From Guillardia theta CCMP2712 (taxonomy: Eukaryota; Protista; Cryptophyta), in contig NW_005434649.1 in NCBI RefSeq assembly GCF_000315625.1, forward strand, positions 624,968-688,967: a DNA stretch of 64,000 nt, written 5' to 3'. The position numbers were made by a program, and so were the translations under genes. Positions 470 to 59,799 of this stretch are shown here, piece by piece. The notes beneath the pieces were generated by a model. That model was given only the letters and a program-made list of their open reading frames with translations, made no database searches and was not told the DNA's origin. The first letter of the stretch is position 1. Every line of letters starts with the position of its first letter.

Positions 470-3400
470 ATGTCTGCTGATGCCGGCAGAGAGTTCAAGA
501 GTCCGATGCTTCTGCTCCCTCTCCTCCTCTCCCTTCTCTCTTGTACATCTGTCCTTCACTCTACCGCCGCCTTCGTCTCCCCTTCCCCCGCCATGCCAAG
601 TGGATTATCGATCAGGGCAACGAGGCCTTCGTGGAGAACCGCAGGAAGGTGTCCCTCCCGTCCTGTGTGGATGAGCTTAGCTGATCAACCGAGCCATGGC
701 AAACGCAATCTCAGGAATGAGAAAAAGGATAATGCGACTGTTTCGCAGCTGATCAATCAAGGGATTCTTAGAGCAGAGCTGGGGGATTTCCTGAAAGCCA
801 GCCATGTGACCGAGTCGATCTTAGAAGAATCGGTTCTTCCCGAGGAAGATGCTAGTGTTACAGTTGTGAACTTGGCCCTCCAGCGCGCCCTGTCCTCTTC
901 GCTGAACCTCACTCTCTGGAACGAGATCGCCAGTGATCCATTTGTGAGCGACTAGACGCTAATCTCGAAAACCCAACGGGGCATGACTTTTCTTGCAGCT
1001 GCAATCACGTTGGAGAAATCAAGAGACCTTCAAGTCTATCCTCTATGGATATGACAGGATCTTCAGTTCTATTCCTGTTGAGAGCTTGCCGCGAAAAGAC
1101 CTTTCAAAGGCGATCTCAACGCTAGCAGATCTCACCGTTACTGTTGTGCTGCACAACAACCTTGAAGAGCGCGAGGTGATGGTGAGACTGATCTCTCAGA
1201 CAAGAGAGAGAATCTTGCGACATGACGTGTCCTCCTCGTCCCTTTACGTTTCCGAGTTCATGTCGAAACTGAAGAGGCTGCAGAAACTTGGTCGTCGCAG
1301 CTGCTCTTTTGTGTGTGTGACCTGATCACCTTGCAACAGAGACCAAGGAAGGCATCATGCTCCTCTTGACCATGTTGGATGCGGTCTATAACTTCCTGCA
1401 TCTTCCATGTCGTGATGGTGAGCAGATGTTGGTCGCCAATCAAGAGACTTCCAGCTGCTTCGCCATGGTATGGTGCTGAAAACTACAAGTACTGGTAGCT
1501 GAGGCTGAAGACGCAGACGAGGATCGTGAGGGAGGAGCTCGAAGAGTTGGATGGGTGTTTGCATGAAATGATTCTACCTTCTGCCATCACACTGACTGCA
1601 AGTCCATAGACAAACATTTGCAAGTGAAAGCAATCAAGTCCTGCAACTGATCTTCAAAGTTGCCTCCTTACCTAGAGACACCGACCAAGTCGTCTCAGTG
1701 CGCACGACCCAAGAATTGTCTCAGAAGATCAACAAGATCGAAGCACTCAAAGAGGTAGAAAGACAGATGGATACAAGTCTTGGAGACTGACGGTCCCCCT
1801 GCTCCGTCAGGGAAACGATCTCCTGCGGAACATGCTCCGTCGCAACGTGCATGTCGACACCAAGAGTGAAGAATCGATGTGCGAGGCCTTTCTTGCCTGT
1901 GATTATCGTGCGAGCGAGGCTCTAGAGGTTTCTGGGCCCATGAGATGGTGAGGAGAGGATAACGCGCATGCAGATCGCCTTGGGAGCGATGGAGGAGTTC
2001 GAACGGTCAGAGGTGACGAGGAGTGATCTCTGGTGACGACACGTGAACATGTAAGGGAGGGATTGACTCGGCTGTCAGTGTGAACATGCTGGTGAAACTC
2101 ACGCGGCGGCTGCTGAGGCAGAACGACGGTCAAGTCTTCCCCTCTTGCAGAAGTCGCGATGATGCTCAGGCACAGAGTCGGACGTGTCGGCGATCGCGGG
2201 GCTGATAGAGGTGACAGCAGCTGCTTCTTCCTCCTCCTCTAAAGATTGTGAGCAGCGAGCGATGAATCGGATCCGGAAGATGATCATCGAAGAGAACCTG
2301 ATGGTCAGCCATTCCAGTGCCCCTCATCCGCAGCCCGGCCCCCCCCCGCCCCCCCCCCCTCCCCTCCTCCTCCTCCTCCTCTCCTCCTCCTCGTCTTCTT
2401 CCTCCTCCTCCTCCTAACTCACTCTCAGCCGGACATGATTCCTCTTACCCAACTGCTGGACGCTGCCGGTCGGCATGTGCCGGGTCAAGGGATCGTCGAG
2501 CTCGGCTGGTGCTCCTCCCCATCCTCCTCGTAGAGGGTTTATGACCATGTGCGGGCGGCAGTTTCCTGCTTGACCACGCGGATCAGTCAAAGCTCCCGTT
2601 CGATCTGGTCCTCTGCAACGTACTGGTCAACAACGTAGTGAGAGGGCAGACGCAGACAGAGAGCGAAGAGGTTGGGGAGTTGGGAGTGAAGACAGGAAGT
2701 GACTTGCTTGCCAGGCTGTCAAGATGTCGATCTTAGAAGTCAAGGACCTGCTGTTCGCAATGCAGGCCAAGGGAATAGCGCCTGACATCTACACAGTCAC
2801 GATGGTTCGATTGGAGGAAAATGCGAAGTGATTACCTGACGAGGATGCATTGAAGATCATTGGTCTGCTGAGACGATATGCGATCTTGGGGAGTGGAGAT
2901 AAAGCGATGAAGGTGAGCTGTTTGTATCTGCCGGGATTCTGATGTGAATTTGGTTGTCAGGAAGCTGATTGGGTGTTGACGATGATGGTAATGGAACTCT
3001 TTTCGACGATAAGAGAGAATGATGCAATGAAAGGATCGATATGACATCGCTGTCAACGATGTCTTTGCCAGGTGACTCGCGCTCTTTTATTCTGCCATGA
3101 TGGAAGAAAGGTTGAGAATGGCGAGTAAAAAGAAGGCAATGTTTCAGAACACAAAATTATCATGAGGGTCAGGAGGAGAGAGGGAGCGGAGTAGGGCAGA
3201 GGTTTGTGCCCGGGGGGGGGGTGAGGAGGAGGGGGAGGAAGGAGATCTACGAAGACTGACTCCAATGATGGCAGGCAATATGCAGACTTGTGCTCGATAT
3301 GCTGCTCTCAAAGAGCGGACGCATTAGTCTGTCTCAAGGTAGAGGAGGAGCAGGAGGAGGAGGAGCGAGCAACTGATTTTGTGTCCTTTCTCAGTTGTCC

Positions 3401-6400
3401 TCGTACATCTTCGAGAAGTTGTGGGAGGTGAATCGATAGATAGGGAGGTTTTGTGGGAGTCACCTGACAGCTGTGGAAGAAACAACCAGTCTGCAACTCA
3501 ACGCTGACGTCCTACCTGCAAGTTTGCAGCGAGACGGCAGGTCGGGGTCTGAGGTGAGAGGGAGCGTCCTGACGCGGTGCCATGACTTGTTGAAGGATGT
3601 CGCTGACGAGGGGGAGGGCTGCGTTTCTTCGATATGCGAGCGAGCAGAACTCAAGCGCTGTGGAGCCCCTCAACTCCCTCCTCGACTGCATCGCCCAGTG
3701 ACGAGCCTGACGTGCCCGACGACCATCATGACAAGCTGCGCAGGAGCGTCGGCAGCGGCATCGACTTCGGCTTCCCGCTGGCGATCAAGCTGATGAGGGG
3801 GGAGCGAGCGCGGGGAGTCCAGCTGGACATCGTGACCTTCAACACCGCCATCAAAGTTTGCGTCAAAGTCGCGCCGTCTCTTCCCAGCTGCCTGCCAGCT
3901 GATGTTGAGCTGTAGGACATCGCAATGGGTCACAAAGGGATCTCGAACATCCTCGTGGTCCTCCATGAAATGGATCGACAGGCTATTGGTGACTTGACCA
4001 TCCCCTCCCCTCCCCTCTCCTCTCCTCTCCTCCCCTCTCCTCTCCTCTCCTCTCCTCTCCTCTCCTCTCCTCTCCTCTCCTCTCCTCTCCTCTCCTCTCC
4101 TCTCCTCTCCTCTCCTCTCCTCTCCTCTCCTCTCCTCTCCTCTCCTCTCCTCTCCTCTCCTCTCCTCTCCTCTCCTCTCCTCTCCTCTCCTCTCCTCTCC
4201 TCTCCTCTCATCTCATCTCATCTCCTCTCCTCTCCTCTCCTCTCCTCTCCTCTCTCCCCATAGATCTCTTTCTCTCTTTCTGCATTCCTCTTCAATCATT
4301 TCCTCATTCTCAGTGAGACTTTTTCTTTCCTTCTCGTGTTTCTTTTTCTTTCACCTGTCAACTCCTCTTTGTCTTCCTCCACTGACTTGCACCCCCACAG
4401 CACCTGATCTCATCTCCATCAATTCCATCCTCAACGCTTGCTCCAAGTCTGCTGCTGCTGGAAACCCTCACGCCTTCCCTGCTGCTTCCAGGAAAGTTTC
4501 TCACTTCTCCTTTTCCTCCTTCCTCCCCTTCCGCCCTCCCCACCTCCTCCCTTCCCATCCCCTCCACACCTCCTCCATCCTCTCCTTGCCTCCCTTGCCT
4601 CCCTCCTTTCCTACATTCCCTCCTCCCGACCTCGCTTCCTTGTACAGAGCTTCGACTGCCTCCCTCACTGTCCTTCCCCGACTTTCTTTCCTTGCCGGAG
4701 GATCGCTGACGACCATGACAGGATCGCTCAGCTCATGTTCAACGTCTGTCCCCACCCGCTTGTCCAGCAGAACTCATCCTTCCCGCAGGCCTCGCTCGAC
4801 ATCAACCCGGATGACTTCTCCTTCAACGCTCTCCTCCAGACCTTTCAAGCTCATGCCAAGCTCACGGTTCCTCCTCCTCCCTCGTCCTTCCCGTCCTCTC
4901 CCTTACACTCAGCTCCCCACCTGCTGCCTCTCCCTCTCCCCACACTTTCTCCCACTCTCCCTCTGAGCTCCTCCTCCTCCTTCCGCCCCTCATTCGCCTT
5001 GTCTCGCTCCTCAGGGTCGGACGTCTGGATGCTTCTCCTACTGCCGGCAAGTTCTATCGATCATGGACGAGATGGGGGTACGTCCTGCCTCCTCTTCCTT
5101 CCCTTCAGCTCCTCCTGATCTCTTCACCTGCTCTCTCTTCCTGTCCTCTCCTTCCTTTCACATTCCTCCTCGCCGTCCTCCCGCTTTCTGCTTCCTCATG
5201 GTCCTCCCCTCCTCTTCCGTCTGCTTGTCCTCAAACTTTCTCCGCGTCCTCCCTCCTGTCCACTCGCTCCCCTTGTCCTCCCTCCCTCCTCTGCCACCTC
5301 TCAATGAAGCACAGGTCCCTCCCACAGCTCCAACTTTCGCGCTCATCATCAGCAGCAGTGAGATCGAGGTGTTTGTGATGTTTCTCTTGCCCCCTCTGAC
5401 TCTCATCCTGCAGGGCACACAGGAGGCAGTAGAGTCTTCCTTCGCTGTCTTCGAGGTCTGAACCACCCTCGCCCCTCCTCTTTCTCATCTTTCCTCCTCC
5501 TCCTCCACGTCATCCTCTGCTTTGATTCTCCTCTCCTTCTTCCCTGCTCTGTTTCTCCACAAGTTGCTTCTCTTGATTGCTTCTCGTCTCATCTGTTCAC
5601 TTCTCATCGCTTCTTCACTCTTCACTCTTCTTCACTCTTCACTCTTCTTCACTCTTCACTCTTCTTCACTCTTCACTCTTCATCTCTTCTTCAATCTTCA
5701 TCCCTTCTTCACTCTTCATCGCTTCTTCACTCTTCGCTCTGCTCCTTTTCTTCTCTCGCGTTCTACTATGAAGAGATTTTCAGTCCATCCCTCGCAAGCT
5801 CAAGACCCGACAGACTTACTTGGCAATGATGAAGTGTCTGATGAAGGAAAGTCTTCTCTCACCCTCGCTGCTTTCCCGCCTCTAACAGCCGAACAGGTCG
5901 GACGTAACAGCGAAGCTATGAACTTGCTGGTCAGACAGGATCCACCATCATCCTTCCTCCTCCTCCTCCTCCTCCTGCACTTTCCCTCCCTTCCCCCGCC
6001 TCCTCTCCCGCTCCTCCTCCCTCTTTTCTCCTTGATCGAGATTATTGCGTCGATCTTGAACGTGCTGATTTGCTACGATTTTCATACAGGATAGCAGTGC
6101 AAGTAGCGGACTAAAACCCAACCTTTACATGTACTCAGCTGCTCTGAAAGCATGCAAGGTTTTATCCTGCCCCTCCTTCTCCTCCATTCTCCTTCTCCTT
6201 CACTCTTCCTGACTTTTTCTCCTTCAGACTTCCGAGTCGCTCCAGTGGGTGCTCAATCACATGAAGAAGAACAGAGTAGAGCTCAGCGCTAACATGAGGC
6301 GACAGGCAGGAACAAAATCTTCTTCTGCTCCCTCCTTACTCCTCCCAGGTGGACAAGATGATGCAAAGTTATCGTTGAGACGCTCATGGCGACTTTCTTC

Positions 6401-6694
6401 ATTGATCCTGCAGCCAACAACTGCGGACAAGAGGGCCGAAGGCACAGAGCAGAAGCAGCGCGAGCGAGTCCTGCTGAACAGATGAGGAGGGGCGGAGGGA
6501 GAACTGGAGACCTGAGGAGAAAGCCGACTTGCGGCACCTGCAGCAAGTTTGAGAAGAGCTCAGGAGCAAGCGAACGAGATCAGCAAGAGGAGGAGGAGGA
6601 GGAAGTGAGGAGGAACAGGAGGAGCAAGAGGAGCAGGAGGTTTGATAGGCGAGCTCACTTGTTTGACCGGAGACAGAGAGCAAGACAGCGGTAG
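470..6694 (+). CDS. Multi-exon pentatricopeptide-repeat (PPR) protein, probably plastid-targeted; 3' end approximate (6485-6694)
   Basis: The N-terminus has a hydrophobic signal peptide followed by TAAFVSPS (ASAF-like bipartite presequence). Exons encode several PPR-type motifs: DLVLCNVLVNN, QAKGIAPDIYTVTM, GVQLDIVTFNTAIKVC, APDLISINSILNACSKS, NPDDFSFNALLQTF, PTAPTFALIISS and GLKPNLYMYSAALKAC. Confidence 0.8.
4003..4258. repeat. (CCTCT)n pentanucleotide microsatellite, intronic
   Basis: Near-perfect CTCCT/CCTCT tandem array inside the PPR gene; it produces spurious SSPLL/GEERR ORFs. Confidence 0.95.
5590..5735. repeat. Degenerate CTTCACTCTT-type tandem repeat, probably intronic
   Basis: Repeated cttcactctt/cttcatcgctt units visible in the sequence. 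Confidence 0.8.
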
Positions 6695-49500: not shown

Positions 49501-50759
49501 TGTCGAGATGGCAACGTCTCTGCTTGCCGACGAAATGGATTTCTGACGACGCGACCAGCAGCATCGAGGCCAGGGAATGCTCGTTCCTCCTGAGGAAGCG
49601 AATGAAACAGGGAGAAGAGGGCATGGGCTCACCTCCTTCTCCTCTTCCCACTGAACTTTCTTGTCCGTTTCCTTGGGCATCCCAGGAGCTCCGTTGAAGG
49701 CCCCCCGTATCCCCCATAGGTCGAGAGGAACGGGTTTCCCGTCGATCCCCTCCTCCCCATGCTGCCGCTTCTTGTCAGCTCGAGCACATGCAAACCAGCA
49801 GGACCCCAGCTGTGAGCGTGCTGAGAGGGACGGGCACATGCTTGGGATGTCGACGCAGCAAATGACCGACTGGATGGCCTGCAGCAGCAGAGAGAAGAAC
49901 TGAGCAGCAGCAGCAGCGGAGGAGGAGGAGGAGGAGGAGGAGGAGGAGGAGACCTTGACGGACAGGAATCTGAGAGGCGAGTGAGTGTCATGCCAATGCA
50001 GGAGAACAATCACCTTGGTGAGGACACGATCATAGGCATCTCGGAGAACAGGCGGCGGAATCACGATCTCCTCCTCTTCGCCACTGAGGGACGAGTAGGA
50101 GGAGGAGGAGGAGGAGGAGGAGCATCGTTAGAAGAGATGAGAGGCAGACAAGGCTTACAGTCTTCTGCTCTTAATCGTCTCCGCCAACCGTCTAGCTGCT
50201 GTGGAAGCTTTCTCAGCCTCCGACCTGTGGCCTTGGACGAGTCAAAACAGTTGAATTCGCTCCTATACCCCCATTTTCCCTCTCCTCCCTTCTAAGTCCT
50301 CTCTCCTCCCCTCCCCTCCCGACCCCTCTATTCTCANNNNNNNNNNNNNNNNNNNNNNNNNNNNNNNNNNNNNNNNNNNNNNNNNNNNNNNNNNNNNNNN
50401 NNNNNNNNNNNNNNNNNNNNNNNNNNNNNNNNNNNNTCCTCCTCCTCCTCCTCCTCCTCCTCCTCCTCCTCCTCTCCTCCTCCTCCTCCTCTCCTCTCCT
50501 CTCCTCTCCTCTCCTCTCCTCTCCTCTCCTCTCCTCTCCTCTCCCTCTCCCTCTCCCTCTCCTTACCTATCACTTGCTCCGCTATCTGCGCTATATGACC
50601 CGACATTTTGACTACCTTGATCAAATCATCGGCAATCGAATCGAACCGATTCATGTTGATTCGATTCGATTCAAAGCAGGTTGACTCAGTGAGGTCACAG
50701 GAGCTGGGCAACAAGGCACAAAACAGTACAATTGATGACCAGTTGGTCACGTCATACAT
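46570..50759 (-). CDS. Large multi-exon hypothetical protein(s) with coiled coil and a degenerate P-loop-like segment
   Basis: Chain of minus-strand coding-like exons (LVEEKEAELRTLTRELQLQ, VNMLLLGPPGSGVSL, MYDVTNWSSIV…); may represent two genes. Confidence 0.4.
47396..47510. repeat. 29-bp tandem repeat, about 4 copies
   Basis: cctcctcgagctactttaccttcccttcc repeated. Confidence 0.9.
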
Positions 50760-51308
50760 GGAAGAGGACGGTGATGAGGAAGAGGCCTCCGGTGATTGGC
50801 ATCCCGTCTTTCAGCTTGGCAGATGCGGGGCGCGGCAGCTGCAACATGGAGGGCGTCGGGGTTGATACTGCTCAGACCCACGATCGCAGATTCCAAGATC
50901 TGAGTTTGCGGCCATGAGGATGGGAGGCGTCTGAGTTTTACTCGCAGAAGGTAAAAAGTGCCTCACAAGCAGAAGAAAGCAGCAACAAGCAAAACCGGCA
51001 AGCATAGAGGATGGGAGGGTACCTGCGGTCGAAAGGTGACCGACGATCCCCAGCTGGCATCGCCTTGACTGTTGTCATGCGCTATAGGAAGCTTGGAGGA
51101 TCCAGAAGCATCAAGCGGGAAAGCCTTGAGGGGATTAGTTTTACTCGCAGATATGATCCTTCCTCGTCCAGCTATCAGACCCTTGTTCTGCTCTTTGAGC
51201 ACCTTCCCGCCTTACTGCTTCCCGTACCCAACGTATGTGCCGCTGCGCCCGCTGAGGATATATAGCCTAAGGGTAAAGCGTACACTGGCGGGCAGTAAAT
51301 CCTATAGA

Positions 51309-54300
51309 GGATTTACTGGCAGAAGATAAAAAGTGCCTCAAGCAAGACAAAGCAGGAACAAGCTGAACCGGCAGGTACACAGTCCACAGCGAGAAGCTGC
51401 ACAAACACACACAAAACACAAGCCCGAAAAGAACCAGCACTGCTGGCACCCAGACGCGGCAGCGCCAGCCCAAGCGCGAAGCCGCGCAGACAAGCAGCCT
51501 AAGGGTCAGGCAATCAAGCAACAAGCAGCAGGAGCATGCAGGAGGAATAAAATCCCTTAGACGCGATACCCGGAGGCAGCCGACTGACCACTGTCAGTCG
51601 AGACGTCCGCTGCCGCCACAAAGCGGGCGGCCGCGGACGGAGAAAGGGCAGCCGCCGACAAGGAGCCGGCGCTGCCCGGGTGTCCGCCTGGGGCAGCGGA
51701 CGGAGGGAGGCTGGACACATGAACACGGTACCGCTCGAGGTAGTCCTCCTCGCTAGCCTCCGAGTCAGCGGTAGCCAAGTCAGTGGTAGCCGCCCGTGAC
51801 GGCGGCGACGCCGCGGCAATGCCCAAGGACCGGCGTGACCCGACCGATGCCGGGGAGGAAGCAGGCGAGCTCGGACCAGCAGCAAGCACCCCAGTGGTGT
51901 CGAGCTCTCCGGAGGCACCCGACGTCACAGTGAGGGACGGAGACGCCTCGCCAGCTCCGCGCCGATCGTCAGCGCCACTCGAAGGGTTTCCCCCATCGGA
52001 GTCGGAGACCTCCGGCGAAGACTCCTCGGGCGACTCGACAAAGTCCGAGGAGGAGCTGTCCTCTGGCTCGAGAAGTGCTTGCGCCCGCAAGGGCGTCATG
52101 CGCCTCGCACCAGACAAGAGCGCTTCCAGCGTCAGCTGCATGGTGAGGCGCTGATAGGTGGCGGCGCGTTTGCGAGCCAAGACCTCAGCAGCAGGGCCGT
52201 CATCAGGCACAAAGTGCCGACCAAACGCCGCATCCTCAAGAGGCATTGAGCGCTGAGCAATGATGTCCGCCAAATACCAGAGGAAGCGGAGGGTGTCAGG
52301 ATGCAGGGTACCGTCCGTCGAGATGGCAAGAGGGATGAACGCTCGAGGAGGAGTAGTCATGGCATATGCAGCGCGATGTTTGCGAATCTTCTCAGACGCT
52401 GCAACATGGAGGGCGTCGAGGTTGACCTCCCCCCACTTGGTCAGGTCGGCAGAGCTACCAATGTAAGGGTGGACCAACGTCACGTCCGCCATCAAGTGGA
52501 CCGCACCCGGAGTCCCTCGATCGCGGATTCCAGGGATGTCCGCCAAATACCAGAGGAAGCGGAGGGTGTCAGGATGCAGGGTACCGTCCGTCGAGATGGC
52601 AAGAGGGATGAACGCTCGAGGAGGAGTAGTCATGGCATATGCAGCGCGATGTTTGCGAATCTTCTCAGACGCTGCAACATGGAGGGCGTCGAGGTTGACC
52701 TCCCCCCACTTGGTCAGGTCGGCAGAGCTACCAATGTAAGGGTGGACCAACGTCACGTCCGCCATCAAGCCCTCGTACTGCTCGGACCCTCGATCGCGGA
52801 TTCCAGGGATGTGGATATCGCCCTTCATCTTGCGGCCATGAGGATGGGAGGGTACCTGCCGTCGAGAACGAGGATCCCCCACTGTATCGATGACGCTCTG
52901 AAGACCAGCTTCGTTCAGCATCGACCGAATCGTACGAGTAAGGTTGTCATGCGCCGTGGGAAGCTTGGAGGATCGGCGTTTGCAGGTCTGGAGATGATGT
53001 GCAGCAACGGAGGGATCGAGCTCGCGCTGACATCCATCACATTTCGTCGGACACTGGCAGATCGGCATGCCATGGAGATAGCAGTCGAGCATCTGAGCAT
53101 AGCGGTGCGGGAAGGCCTTGAGGGGGTAGTAGCTCGAGACTCGCATCGGAGAGTGGCTCAGGTCTCGCTCAGGAAAATGAGCGAAGATGGTAGACTGCAA
53201 GACCCTATCCTGCGACTTGAGCGAGTGTGTCCTGCGGCTGTGCAAGGTGAGGATATCACGCTGCTGATCGGTCAGCGCAGCGCGAGCATGCACATGGCGA
53301 GGGAAGACGCGCATGACAAGAGGAGTCACATTTCGCTGCGCAGGGGGGAGGAATGAAGTGCTCATGAGACGAGTCGACGAGAGCGCGCAAACCAGGGATG
53401 TGTACCACAGATGCCGGGGGGCGTCCTGCGTCATCAGGCACAGCAGCCGGGGCAGGTGGGATCGCCGCGCCATCTGCAGCCGGTGCAGGAGCCTGGACAC
53501 GACGGTAGAGGATCGCTCCAGCATTATGAACGAAGTCGTGCGCCTCAACGAAGAAGGTCGCCAGAGGATGCTTCTGGGCACGGAGAGATCTCGAGCAGTG
53601 AACGTCCAGGCTATGAGGAGAGGTCAGCGTCCGGGACATGGGCTGGTCAGAGTACCAAGCGAGGAAGCGAGCGATAGCCGTATAGTAAACAGCGGGGTGT
53701 AGACCCTCAGAGGGCGTGAACTCGTCCCCTCCCCGACTATGCGGAAGCTCCCGCTTGAACCTCGCAAACTCGAGCAGGTCGGGATGCGCGGCGAGGTACT
53801 GCGAGGAAGGCCAGCGGTGGTATTTCTCTAGCGCCAGGTGGACAGAGAGGTCAAAGCGACGAATCTGTGATTGGACCCGCGGGAGAAACGGAGAAGACCC
53901 CTGGAGGAAGAAGCGCAGCTTCTGGAGATGGCTCGCCCTCACCAGCGTCTTGAACATGAAGCCATGCTGGACGAGCCCGAGCTTCGAGAGCTCTTCGTTG
54001 AGGGTAGAAACCTTCGCTCGGAGCTGACTAGCATGAAATCCATCCGTGCCGATAGGCAGGCCGCCAAGTGTAATCCCGCCAGTGACGACCTCGAAGTGAA
54101 GAAGTTGAGTCTTGAGACGGCGCTTAAGGCTCTTCTTCAGCTGCGAGAGATCAGGGTGTTGATGCCAGGAGGGGATGTAAACTTTCGACTCGCGAGGTTG
54201 AATCTCTAGCTTCAGATCAGCTAACATGTACTTCTTCATAGCGGACGTAGCTGCAACGGCATCCTCGAGTGGACCGACAAGCACGACGTTGTCAGCATAG

Positions 54301-54350
54301 GCCAAGACTCGAACAGAGGGAAAAAGCTGGCGCTTGAGAAATACCACCGC
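51309..54350 (-). mobile_element. Main 5'-truncated CRE-like element copy; 3' UTR 51309-51556 ending …CTTCTGCCAGTAAATCC, no poly(A) tail
   Basis: RT C-terminal half, Zn knuckle and RLE ORF followed by a ~250-nt TG-rich UTR whose end recurs identically in other copies. Confidence 0.85.
51557..54350 (-). pseudogene. RT-Zn knuckle-RLE polyprotein remnant (5'-truncated, frameshift near 53345)
   Basis: RT motifs VLAYADNVVLVG, LKLEIQPRESKVY, ITLGGLPIG and ELPHSRGG. CCHC knuckle CDGC…HHLQTC followed by AHDNL. RLE motifs KGDIHI, ADVTLVHP, EKIRKH and FIPLAISTDG. The frame switches in a C-run between ORFs 53256-54365 and 51557-53581. Confidence 0.85.
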
Positions 54351-57300
54351 TTTTGCTTGAGGCACTTTTTCCCTCGTGTGTCCAGCCTCCCTCCGTCCGC
54401 TGCCCCAGGCGGACCCCCGGGCAGCGCCGGCTCCTTGTCGGCGGCTGCCCTTTCTCCGTCCGCGGCCGCCCGCTTTGTGGCGGCAGCGGACGTCTCGACT
54501 GACAGTGGTCAGTCGGCTGCCTCCGGGTATCGCGTCTAAGGGATTTTATTCCTCCTGCATGCTCCTGCTGCTTGTTGCTTGATTGCCTGACCCTTAGGCT
54601 GCTTGTCTGCGCGGCTTCGCGCTTGGGCTGGCGCTGCCGCGTCTGGGTGCCAGCAGTGCTGGTTGTTTTCGGGCTTGTGTTTTGTGTGTGTTTGAGAGTA
54701 TAGGATTTACTGGCAGAAGGTAAAAAGTGCCTCAAGCAAAACAAAGCAGGAACAAGCTGAANNNNNNNNNNNNNNNNNNNNNNNNNNNNNNNNNNNNNNN
54801 NNNNNNNNNNNNNNNNNNNNNNNNNNNNNNNNNNNNNNNNNNNNNNNNNNNNNNNNNNNNNGGTACACAGTCCACAGCGAGAAGCTGCACAAACACACAC
54901 AAAACACAAGCCCGAAAAGAACCAGCACTGCTGTGCAGCTTCTCGCTGTGGACTGTGTACCTGCCGGTTCAGCTTGTTCCTGCTTTGTTTTGCTTGAGGC
55001 ACTTTTTACCTTCTGCCAGTAAATCCTATATATAGCCTAAGGGTCAGGCAATCAAGCAACAAGCAGCAGCAGGAGCATGCAGGAGGAATAAAATCCCTTA
55101 GACGCGATACCCGTTTTACTTTCTGCCAGTAAATCCTATACATTCCCGGAGGCAGCCGACTGACCACTGTCAGTCGAGACGTCCGCTGCCGCCACAAAGC
55201 GGGCGGCCGCGGACGGAGAAAGGGCAGCCGCCGACAAGGAGCCGGCGTTGCCCGGGGGTCCGCCGGGGGCAGCGGACGGAGGGAGGCTGGACACAGGAAC
55301 ACGGTACCGCTCGAGGTAGTCCTCCTCGCTAGCCTCCGAGTCAGCGGTAGCCGAGTCAGCGGTAGCCGCCTGCTTTGTTTTGCTTGAGTCACTTTTTCCC
55401 TTCTGCCAGTAAATCCATTGAAGGCCGCCCGTGACGGCGGCGACGCCGCAGCAATGCCCAAGGACCGGCGTGACCCGACCGATGCCGGGGAGGAAGCAGG
55501 CGAGCTCGGACCAGCAGCAAGCACCCCAGTGGTGTCGAGCTCTCCGGAGGCACCCGACGTCACAGTGAGGGACGGAGACGCCTCGCCAGCTCCGCGCCGG
55601 TCGTCGGCGCCACTCGACGTGTTTCCCCCATCGGAGTCGGAGACCTCCGGCGAAGACCCCTCGGGCGACTCGACAAAGTCCGAGGAGGAGCTGTCCTCTG
55701 GCTCGAGAAGTGCTTGCTTGACCCTTCGGCTGCTTGTCTGCGCGACTTCGCGCTTGGGCTAGCGATGCCGCGTCTGGTTGCCAGCAGTGCTGGTTCTTTT
55801 CGGGCTTGTGTTTTGTGTGTGATTGTGCAGCTTCTCGCTGTGCGCTGTGTGCCTGGAGGTTTAGCTTGTTCCTGCTTTGTTTTGCTTGAGGCACTTTTTA
55901 CCTTCTGCCAGTAAATCCGTAATCCGAGCAAAACCTAAGGGTCAAGCAATCAAGCAACAAGCCAGTAAATCCAGAAGCAGCAGGAGCATGCAGGAGGAAT
56001 AAAATCCCTTAGACGCGATACCCGGAGGCAGCCGACTGACCACTGTCAGTCGAGACGTCCGCTGCCGCCACAAAGCTGGCGGTCGCGGACGGAGAAAGGG
56101 CAGCCGCCGACAAGGAGCCGGCGTTGCCCGGGGGTCCGCCGGGGGCAGCGGACGGTGGGAGGCTGGGCACAGGAGCTCGGTATTCGCTAGCCTCCGTAGC
56201 CACCCCAAACCCCCCGGTCGCGGGTAGCCGCTGCAATGCCCAAGGNNNNNNNNNNNNNNNNNNNNNNNNNNNNNNNNNNNNNNNNNNNNNNNNNNNNNNN
56301 NNNNNNNNNNNNNNNNNNNNNNNNNNNNNNNNNNNNNNNNNNNNNGCGTGACCCGACCGATGCCGGGGAGGAAGCAGGCGAGCTCGGACCAGCAGTAAGC
56401 ACCCCAGTGACATACCCAGTGGTGTCGAGGGAGTGAATGGATTTACTGGCAGAAGGTAAAAAGTGCCTAAAGCAAAACAAAGCAGGAACAAGCTAAACCT
56501 CCTGGCACACAGCACACAGCGAGAAGCTGCACAATCACACACAAAACACAAGCCCGAAAAGAACCAGCACTGCTGGCACCCAGACGGAGGCACCCGACGT
56601 CACAGTGAGGGACGGAGACGCTTCGCCAGCTCCGCGCCGGTCGTCGGCGCCACTCGAAGTGTTACCCCCATGGGAGTCGGAGACCTCCGGCGAAGACTCC
56701 TCCTCGGGCGACTCGACAAAGTCCGAGGAGGAGCTGTCCTCTGGCTCGAGAAGTGCTTGCGCCCGCAAGGGCGTCATGCGCCTCGCACCAGACAAGAGCG
56801 CCTCCAGCGTCAGCTGCATAGTGAGGCGCTGATAGGTGGCGGCGCGTTTGCGAGCCAAGACCTCAGCAGCAGGGCCGTCATCAGGCACGAAGTGCCGACC
56901 AAACGCCGCATCCTCAAGAGGCATCGAGCGCTGAGCAATGATGTCCGCCAGATACCAGATGTCGAAAGGCGAAGCCGCGCAGACAAGCAGGGAGGGTCAA
57001 GCAACAGTCTGTAGGAGGGGTAACAAGCAGCAGGAGCATGGGGACTTCCGAAATGAAACCCCCTTAGACGCGATACCCGGAGGCATCCGACTGACCGCTG
57101 TCAGTCGAGACGTCCGCCGCCGCCGCAAAGCGGGCGGCCGCGGACGGAGAAAGAGCAGCCGCCAACAAGGAGCCGGCGTTGCCCGGGGGTCCGCCGGGGG
57201 ATGCGGACGGAGGGAGGCTGGACACATGAACACGGTACCGCTCGAGGTGACGCATCCAGTCCTCCTCATTAGCCTCCGAGTCAGCGGTAGCCGAGACCAA

Positions 57301-57595
57301 CACCACCCGTGACGGCGGCGACGCCGCATCGATGATGCCCAGGGACCGGGGCTGTGCGGCATCGGAGGCAGGCGAGGAAGCTTGGAGGATCGAGAAGCAT
57401 CAAGCTTGCGCTGGCAGCCATCATGCGTCGGACACTGGCAGATCGGCATGCCATGAAGATAGCAGTCGACCATCTGAGCATACCGATACGGGAAAGCCTT
57501 GAGGGGATAGTAGCTCGAGACTCGCATCGGAGAGTGGCTGTGTGTTTGTGTGTGTGTGTGTTCAATTATGGGAGGAGGTTCACCAACACGACAAC

Positions 57596-59799
57596 CTAAG
57601 GTGAGCATCTGCTGGGGTCGCGAGGAAACATGGACGCCTTCCTGACGTTGTCGAGTCCGAGGTAGAGGAAGACGACGCGCTGGAGTGAAAGTGAGAGGGG
57701 ATGAGGAGAGGATGTCTTACCTCCAGCCCGATGCCAGCTCCTGCATGCGGCGACACGCCATGCTGGAAGGAGGTCACGTAGGCCTGTAGGGGCTCCAACG
57801 GCATCCCCTTCTTCTCAACCTGCCCCCTCCTCGTCAATCTCCTCCTCTTCCTCCTCCTCCTGCACTGGACTTTCCTGTGAGATCAGCAGGGCTGGGTCGT
57901 GTACTCTTTGCGCGCCAGAGCAGATCTCTTGTCCTCGGAGGAAGACATCGTAAGAGTTGGTGAACCTCTCGTCGTCTGCCAGACAACCTTGAGCTGCTTC
58001 CTCTCCCTCCCCTCTCTTCGCACTCACCAGGGCAAGGCATGGTGTAGAAGGGACGAACAGCTGCCGGAAAGCGATCGAGAATGAAAAAGTCAGTGTCGAA
58101 CTTGTTCTTGACGAGCTCTCCCAGCCTAGAAGAAATCAAAGAATGAAGGAGGAGGAGGTGGCTTACTTGAGCTCGAGCGAGCTTGACAGGTCCTCCAGAA
58201 GCTCTGCCTCCTCACCAGCGTCTCGCAGCATCTGCTGGCTCCTTCAGGCAAGGCAGGCAGGAAGGAAGGCGGGAGGGAGGGAGGGAGGGAGGGAGGGGGG
58301 CGGGGCGGGGGGGGTCGCACCTGGATCGCCTCCTCCCAGTGGAGGATGCAGGGCTCCTCAGTGAATTGAACGGGGAGGGACTTGTACTGGGAGCGGACGA
58401 CGGAGAGTTCAGAGGAGAAGCGGCTCTCGAGGCCGAGGAAGATGTGCTTGAAGAGGGAGTGGAGGAGGAGGAGGGTCTCGTTGTAGTGCTCCTCTATCGC
58501 CATCTCCAGGTCCAGCCCCGTGAACTCGCACAGATGACGGCGGGTGTTGGACTTCTCGGCGCGGAAGACAGGTCCGATCTCAAACACTCGACCGAGGTCT
58601 CCCGAGATCGCCATCTGCTTGTACAGCTGCGGCGACTGAGCGAGGCAGGCCGAGCGACCGAAGTAGTCGGTGCGGAAGACTTCGGCGCCTCCCTCGCTCT
58701 CCCCGGAGATGAGCTTCGGCGTGTGGATCTCGATGAAGTTCTCCGCATAGAGCGCTTCTCGGAACAGCTGGCAGATCGCCGACTGGACCCTCATGATCGC
58801 GTGGTTGGCGGGCACGCGCAGGTCAAGCCAGCGGTTGTCTAGTCGAGCTTCCTGGTAGACGGGAGAGAAAGGCTTCTCGCTCCCTTGCGACGCTGCGATC
58901 TCCTCCTCCGATCTCGCCGCGTCCTCCATCAGGAACGGGAGGATGGCCGGCGCCTTGGACAGCACGTAGCATCGCTCGATCTGAACCTCGACGGAGCCTT
59001 GCGAGCAAGACTTCACCTCGGCAGCCGCCACCAGCCCCTTGACGTCCACAATCGACTCAAGCGTCAGGTCGTTGAGGAATCGCAGGAAGCGCTTGCTGCC
59101 TTCCGCGTCCTCCTTGCTCTTGAAGTAGCATGCTTGGACTGTACGTGACGGCGAGTCGATGGCTCTGAGCACAAGGAAACAAGAGGAGCCCTTCCCGCGT
59201 ATCGCCGACACTCTCCCTCTCAGCCAGACCGTCTCTCCCGCTCTCACTCCTCCCTCCTCTCCGAGCGTCGCGATCTTTGCGAAGGTTCTGCCAGTCTCTC
59301 CTCTCGACCGCATGACCTCATACTGCCCGAACATCCTCTCGGGCTCCTGCTGCACCGACGTGTAGACGATCGGCGTCTTGAGCGCCTCCATCGCCTCCTC
59401 CTCAGCGGCTGCGAGCGCTGCTTCCTCTGCCTGCTTCTTCGCCTTCTTCAGCTGCTTCTCAGCTTCCTTTGCAGCCTACAGTCACGTGCCGTAAGAAACA
59501 GTCCAGTGATAAGCGGCGGGAAGGGAAGGAGGAACGAGAGGAGGAGGAGGGAGAGGAGGAGCAGGAGCAAGTGGCTTTACCTTGCGAGCTTCTCGTTCCT
59601 CTTTGATTTTCTGCTTCTCTTCCTCTGACTTGTCGCTGGCGACTGGATCAGATGACATCATCCGAACGACTGGATTGAGTCGCCGCTGGTGCCTGGAGGA
59701 CAGCAGGAGGGTCGAGCTTCTCCCCGTGATCAGCGACAGATGTCGCGGCATCCTCGTCACCGCCGGGAGAAACGCCAACGTTGGACGAGCCGTCTGCAT
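57596..59799 (-). CDS. DARS1: Aspartyl-tRNA synthetase, eukaryotic cytosolic type, with an N-terminal transit-peptide-like extension; multi-exon
   Basis: Anticodon OB fold (VWLRGRV…RGKG…FLVLR…VQ); [17 protein letters not shown]…[79 protein letters not shown] and MFPRDP. Confidence 0.95.

Follow-up and report, generated by a model that had tools for sequence, protein, structure and literature searches.

The 64,000-nucleotide stretch of the Guillardia theta CCMP2712 nuclear genome considered here (referred to below as the window) contains a nest of fragments of a single retrotransposon, in which tiny plus-sense copies of the element's extreme 3' end split minus-sense copies of the same element at 55114-55144, 55371-55423, and 55963-55974. 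The question raised by this locus is what kind of activity put them there. The initial annotation saw in them abortive target-primed reverse transcription (TPRT), or the patching of breaks, and went on to propose a self-targeting, telomerase-like activity that adds short tips. We find that the inserts are very probably normal TPRT products of a non-LTR element (one without long terminal repeats) of the R2 superfamily, bearing a restriction-like endonuclease (RLE), and that they represent the short end of its ordinary 5'-truncation spectrum. The micro-inserts themselves are not a new activity. What is unusual is the early end of synthesis and the strict confinement of the products to one nest, a candidate centromere, per scaffold.

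As the reference for mapping fragments we used one nearly complete natural copy (L014:2679-7587; 4,909 nt), not a consensus of the element. The three inserts, their hosts, and the copy that supplies the empty sites for all three are as follows.

55114-55144, plus strand: micro-insert 1, TTTTACTTTCTGCCAGTAAATCC followed by TATACATT, that is, 23 nt of the 3' tail (1 mismatch), a TAT tag, and ACATT
55371-55423, plus strand: micro-insert 2, 46 nt of the tail (2 mismatches), an ATT tag, and GAAG
55963-55974, plus strand: micro-insert 3, the 10-nt tip CAGTAAATCC and AG (a 12-nt tip if the host GC is counted as microhomology)
55034-55717, minus strand: host copy A, reference positions 4722 to 4131, split by micro-inserts 1 and 2
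55934-56182, minus strand: host copy B, reference positions 4720 to 4488, split by micro-insert 3
51309-54328, minus strand: main copy, a 5'-truncated 3' part with the C terminus of the reverse transcriptase (RT), a zinc knuckle, the RLE, and the tail; its 3' tip lies at 51309-51320

In each case the copied 3' end is followed by 2 to 8 further bases, and the whole is flanked by a target duplication: CCCG at 55110-55113 and 55145-55148 for insert 1, GCCGCC at 55365-55370 and 55424-55429 for insert 2, and AAGC at 55959-55962 and 55975-55978 for insert 3. Each insert also has two or three unbroken paralogous sites in the window, which are restored when the insert and one repeat are deleted. For insert 1, three paralogs (from 55988, from 51544, and on the reverse strand at 54500-54552) read ...gatacccggaggc... 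without interruption; for insert 2, the main copy is unbroken at 51764-51815; and for insert 3, the exact empty site occurs in two paralogs (from 51496, and on the reverse strand at 54550-54602), while a third (from 55034) has one extra AGC. The three micro-inserts are therefore real, and the coordinates and duplications given for them by the initial annotation were exact. Nor are they chance matches, since the 10-mer is expected 0.5 times in the DNA sampled below, where 163 occurrences were found, 17 of them with a tail of 17 nt or less.

Read support is partial. Logan word depth is non-zero in the bins holding each insert in X1 and X2, with X3 covering the insert 2 bin only; these come from separate studies of 2011 and 2021, with a 2023 study for insert 2 as well. 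Depth in these bins lies well below that of the flanking multicopy sequence, as expected of low-copy junctions. Logan contigs contain site 2 in its empty form as well (a joint from 55364 to 55424 with 6 shared letters), which matches the 6-nt duplication and is expected from other copies.

Genome-wide (87.1 Mb in 669 scaffolds), the 12-mer tip GCCAGTAAATCC has 816 exact matches, 408 on each strand, as opposed to 2 for the reversed control. Hits that carry at least 30 nt of tail (with up to 2 mismatches) number 713, and those with at least 60 nt (with up to 3) number 466, in accord with the length spectrum of the sample described below. We tabulated in full the tips in the window and 28 further loci, comprising 163 tips in approximately 254 kb of unique non-N DNA (not 263 kb, as L033 and L034 share about 9 kb with the window; no tip was counted twice). 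Element DNA follows 160 of the 163. Thirty-seven clean nested inserts, in which the host continues across, were found at 18 loci; their median length is 48 nt, with a host overlap of 0 to 6 nt (mostly 1 to 6), a few small deletions, and a median of 6 extra bases. We also inspected 48 small interruptions in host copies, of which 34 terminate in the exact tip and at least another 5 in a mutated one; two tail fragments (L024:2723-2781 and L016:1346-1388) lack a tip.

The three window inserts are not a class apart in size. Tail length at the 163 tips has a median of 63 nt (quartiles, 32/63/187) and ranges from 10 to more than 700 nt; 46% of tails do not exceed 60 nt, and only 4% are longer than 690 nt. 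Expressed as fragments per nucleotide of length, density falls from about 2 (lengths up to 33 nt) to 1.3 (up to 68 nt) and then to 0.3 for longer fragments. The approximately 4-fold drop past ~68 nt falls at the base of a hairpin that is predicted for the tail RNA but lacks statistical support. As for what might cause so early a stop, a structural block to RT is not supported, because the predicted fold of the last 152 nt is no more stable than that of shuffled sequences (z = -0.63).

Insertion points span reference positions 1267 to 4885 (at least 3.6 kb), in proportion to copy coverage, which rises in the sample from 2 copies at the 5' end of the reference to 78 at the 3' end. New copies thus lie inside older ones, in arrays dominated by 3' ends, as in Zepp-like clusters (discussed below). 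No base preference was detected at either junction (n = 34), and an apparent hotspot near reference position 4720 was no better than chance across the sample. Convergent tip pairs were likewise not in excess (13 tips flagged versus about 7 expected). The target copies that we observed are the element itself and not spliced-leader genes, and with neither a motif nor a strong hotspot, we found no single defined insertion site in a multicopy gene, a trait typical of RLE elements but not universal among them.

The bases that follow the tip were originally described as non-templated, and this holds only in part. The first three are recurrent, namely, TAT at 89 of 163 tips (55%), ATT at 21 (13%), and ACT, GAC, or GTA at 6 to 7 each, and behave as a templated or subfamily-specific tag; the bases after them vary. 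The additions TATACATT and ATTGAAG in the window are each a 3-nt tag plus some 4 to 5 variable bases. A rarer, second tip variant, CTGCGAGTAAAAC, was seen at 12 places in the sample, two of them being fragments on the left margin of the window nest. Two metagenome scans, with the 3' junction of insert 2 and with a 27-nt piece of the tail, returned no match, although these scans may not have covered records of this genome.

What kind of element is this? The premise that it is an RLE-bearing non-LTR retrotransposon was borne out at the level of the predicted fold, which supports its assignment to the R2 superfamily. The element's open reading frame (ORF) gives a weak RVT_1 match, the window ORF at 53256-54365 contains a YADN motif, and homologues carry an RT annotation; proteins from other copies bear GUITHDRAFT_... 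names of Guillardia theta CCMP2712. Downstream of the RT lie a CxC..H..C knuckle and a domain in which D106, D126, and K158 are invariant across an alignment of 30 distant relatives. A model of this domain built from the 30-sequence alignment (pLDDT, the predicted local distance difference test score, of 83; a single-sequence fold gave 35 and was unusable) has R2 proteins as its seven best PDB matches, all with probability 1.00 and E values of 1e-5 to 2e-3. These are R2Tg, R2Pm, and R2Bm (zebra finch, turtle, and silkworm), and other PD-(D/E)XK nucleases rank next. At the sequence level, phmmer against PDB sequences gave no match for either the RT or the RLE ORF, and an Atlas feature search returned generic RT clusters only. 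No match to Exo_endo_phos, the mark of an apurinic/apyrimidinic (AP)-type endonuclease, was found in ORFs of 977 to 1,019 amino acids. The lack of such an endonuclease and of LTRs, together with copies that are 3' anchored and 5' truncated, is as expected of the same group. An N-terminal DNA-binding domain was not found in the longest relatives.

Some features of individual copies may be recorded here. Open frames of 1,920 to 2,559 amino acids were discarded as artifacts of runs of N. The 5' part of the long ORF contains a variable trinucleotide (polyglutamine-type) repeat (L012:5391-5920, L009:4539-5096, and L014:3285-3716), which gives rise to spurious TFIIA matches. The 5' region of the near-full copy in L014 also holds a 74-nt internal piece of the 3' tail without a tip (L014:3445-3518), which is missing at the matching place in L009. 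In the main copy of the window, some 91 codons inside the RLE domain are duplicated in tandem and in frame (52535-52823, minus strand; L014 positions 6352-6629 twice), and the ORF is still open.

We favor TPRT because of the exact 3' anchoring, the short target duplications, the bases added at the 3' junction, and the smooth spectrum of 5' truncation. Under this reading, the endonuclease would nick inside a nest of older copies, without a detectable sequence motif. The 3'-OH so released would prime cDNA synthesis at the exact RNA 3' end (...GCCAGTAAATCC plus the 3-nt tag), after a few untemplated bases. Synthesis would mostly end within about 70 nt, and the short cDNA would then join the far side of the staggered break to leave duplications of 0 to 6 nt. 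The protein responsible would presumably be the element's own. Of what was first proposed, insertion by TPRT into the element's own copies is supported; the special activity is not.

Several points weigh against this account. Known RLE elements are mostly site specific, and no site motif by which the nest could be recognized was found here. The RVT_1 match of the element ORF is weak (E = 1e-5; 25.8 to 26 bits, below the Pfam cut-off of 29.6 bits). A duplication is absent from 9 of 34 clean inserts, and small deletions accompany a few, so that a minority may have arisen without the endonuclease. Only about 20% of the tips in the genome were examined. Finally, the window inserts sit on a 1,384-bp contig (54862-56245) between two 100-N gaps, and the supporting reads are short Logan contigs, too short to span repeats, with no long read across the inserts.

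The alternative that survives best is one in which no endonuclease is needed: the region, fragile and rich in repeats, would suffer random double-strand breaks, and end joining would capture pieces of element RNA or cDNA at them. The inserts without a duplication would fit such patching, as would small losses of host DNA (e.g., ~47 nt at the 54937/55034 junction), the two tail fragments without a tip, and extra bases that resemble filler DNA. However, at least 39 of the 48 small interruptions end exactly at the RNA 3' terminus, which random capture would not produce; most inserts have duplications of 1 to 6 nt; and no other RNA species is seen as a patch. We therefore consider patching an improbable explanation for the inserts as a whole, although capture at random breaks may account for a minority of them.

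Less probable still is a dedicated, self-targeting, telomerase-like activity that adds only a short tip, antiparallel to the element's own DNA. All three window inserts are indeed antiparallel to their hosts, tips of 10 to 17 nt are common (17 of 163), and tandem tip pairs exist. In the wider sample, however, 22 inserts are antiparallel and 15 parallel (P = 0.32), and lengths form a continuum from 10 nt up to full 3' halves. The tandem tips that we inspected proved to be nested inserts, each with a duplication of its own, or to stem from a local 29-nt duplication, and not to be reiterated copies of a unit; moreover, target duplications point to insertion where internal breaks are staggered and not to the extension of free ends. 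This reading is thus largely refuted by the counts of orientation and length, and the antiparallel rule suggested by the window does not hold. Later deletion of longer inserts is also unlikely as a source of the short ones, as it would need host continuity and a duplication to have been restored dozens of times. An assembly artifact, in which Sanger-era contigs of a collapsed repeat were mis-joined, can be given almost no credence despite the flanking gaps, the repetitive surroundings, and the short Logan contigs, as mis-joins do not make inserts of 12 to 53 nt with exact flanking duplications in otherwise collinear copies, the same arrangement is found again at 37 or more sites across 18 loci, and words from the insert bins have non-zero depth in the separate 2011 and 2021 studies (and, for insert 2, that of 2023).

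TPRT as we envisage it leaves the choice of target to be accounted for. On the ten largest scaffolds (C1 to C10), tips lie in one stretch of 2 to 29 kb each, with a bare 12-mer at C6:1111858 as the sole exception. More generally, on each listed scaffold the tips are spread over no more than some 30 kb, in one cluster of 2 to 30 kb; a single 30-mer at C21:590292 strays about 60 kb from the C21 nest. One cluster per chromosome, as in Zepp-like elements, is thus seen here at the level of scaffolds. Tips and RT fragments often cluster near mid-scaffold on scaffolds of 1.1 to 1.4 Mb. It is because insertions land almost only in one nest of nearly pure element per scaffold that most of them fall within copies of the element, in both orientations. 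Outside the nests, even tiny inserts are nearly absent from the genome, which speaks for active targeting over selection alone. Such targeting may be directed by centromeric chromatin or by the element's own DNA. With nests that are 89% element, targeting of own DNA and targeting of a chromosomal domain predict nearly the same outcome. Nevertheless, only 2 real tips adjoin unmatched DNA, versus about 18 expected under uniform insertion within the nest spans, a deficit that leans toward own-DNA targeting, although nest edges and history confound it.

The clusters, at one per scaffold, make up a candidate centromere map of Guillardia theta. A bolder, and on balance unlikely, possibility is that the nests are its centromeres, built and renewed by an R2-type element that would recognize centromeric chromatin or its own DNA (for example, by RNA pairing with resident copies) and not a fixed sequence. 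In that case, frequent and very short TPRT products would be the chief source of turnover in centromere sequence, and this would be a second, independent origin of the way of life of Zepp, the self-nesting element of green algae.

The window nest is the sole cluster found on its scaffold, and ordinary genes flank it, such as a class II tRNA synthetase at 58126-59391. Its remaining parts are as follows.

50838-57539 (C25:675805-682506 of genome G000), mixed strands: whole nest of element fragments, 6.7 kb, ~89% element derived
50935-51000, minus strand: 64-nt fragment of the second tip variant CTGCGAGTAAAAC between the two copies of an 11-nt direct repeat, AGGATGGGAGG; the surrounding DNA has no match to the reference copy
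51138-51150: stub of ~14 nt of the same tip variant, at the left edge of the nest
51293-51302, plus strand: further 10-nt tip and TAT, facing the tip of the main copy across 6 nt (a convergent pair)
54862-54937, minus strand: tail piece, mapped onto the reference copy
54932-55033, plus strand: 95-nt tip fragment (tip, 54932-55026) and TATATAT(AG), head to head with the preceding tail piece
55711-55933, plus strand: 208-nt tip fragment of a second tail variant (tip to 55918), then 15 extra bases (GTAATCCGAGCAAAA)

The 64-nt fragment at 50935-51000 would have been inserted, at the edge of the nest, into DNA that is either very old or not derived from the element. About 280 bp to the left of that edge, directly after a 100-N gap, lies a (CCT)n/(CTCCT)n microsatellite (50437-50560). 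The head-to-head tail pieces at 54862-55026 form a 30-nt inverted repeat (54862-54891 and 54932-54961) whose left arm enters the assembly gap; the junction looks like twin priming or a fold-back. The 95-nt and 208-nt tip fragments, which differ in tail variant and in extra bases, adjoin minus-sense hosts at nearly identical reference positions (4722 at 55026/55034 and 4720 at 55918/55934). In runs X7 to X10 and X14, which we guess to be RNA, some 38 to 40% of the words of the stretch are present, among them those of a 618-nt contig that covers 55427-55717. They may reflect transcription of the element, DNA carry-over being an alternative source of these words.

With one small nest per scaffold, the tips provide a directly testable centromere candidate for each of the ~90 Guillardia chromosomes or scaffolds. 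The roughly 800 fragments anchored at the tip preserve, as a record made in nature, the outcomes of R2-type TPRT, covering the extent of synthesis, the stagger of the cuts, and the junction bases. R2 enzymes are under development for gene insertion, and a relative that has no fixed target sequence, and yet is confined to one domain, is of practical interest. If the centromere reading were true, it would entail a new kind of targeting for RLE elements, with an endonuclease other than that of Zepp. In Zepp, the endonuclease is of the AP type and the tail is poly(A).

Known systems each share some of these traits. Like truncated mammalian L1 copies, the Guillardia fragments are 3' anchored and have target duplications, and the head-to-head arrangement at 54862-55026 is similar to the inversions that arise from twin priming of L1. 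Unlike the Guillardia element, however, L1 has an endonuclease of another class and inserts genome-wide at a loose T-rich site, and its truncated copies typically measure hundreds of bases to kilobases, not tens of bases. With R2 and other RLE elements (R4, NeSL, CRE/SLACS/CZAR, and Genie), the element shares a putative RT followed by a CCHC knuckle and a PD-(D/E)XK endonuclease, 5'-truncated copies, and the lack of poly(A), as well as the extra bases at the 3' junction known from R2 biochemistry. Those elements use one defined site in a multicopy gene (28S ribosomal DNA or spliced-leader genes), whereas the insertion points of the Guillardia element are spread, with no motif, over at least 3.6 kb of the element that hosts them.

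In the literature that we searched, we found no description of centromeres, or of this element, in a cryptophyte nucleus. The closest parallel is that of Zepp in Chlorella and Coccomyxa and ZeppL in Chlamydomonas, where nested clusters of long interspersed nuclear elements, consisting mostly of 3' ends, occur once per chromosome over 1.5 to 42 kb and are taken as the centromere (PMC3446292, PMC8226300, PMC9940879). The nests of Guillardia theta are alike in being 2 to 30 kb long, single on each scaffold, 89% element, self-nested, and rich in 3' ends. They differ in that their host is a cryptophyte and not a green alga, in that truncation is more extreme (median, ~50 to 60 nt; down to 10 nt) with both orientations represented, and in that the element, unlike the L1-clade Zepp, has an R2-type RLE and, in place of poly(A), a 3-nt tag and a few extra bases. 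The Guillardia nests thus represent, for an R2-type element with a cryptophyte host, a variant that has converged on the way of life of Zepp.

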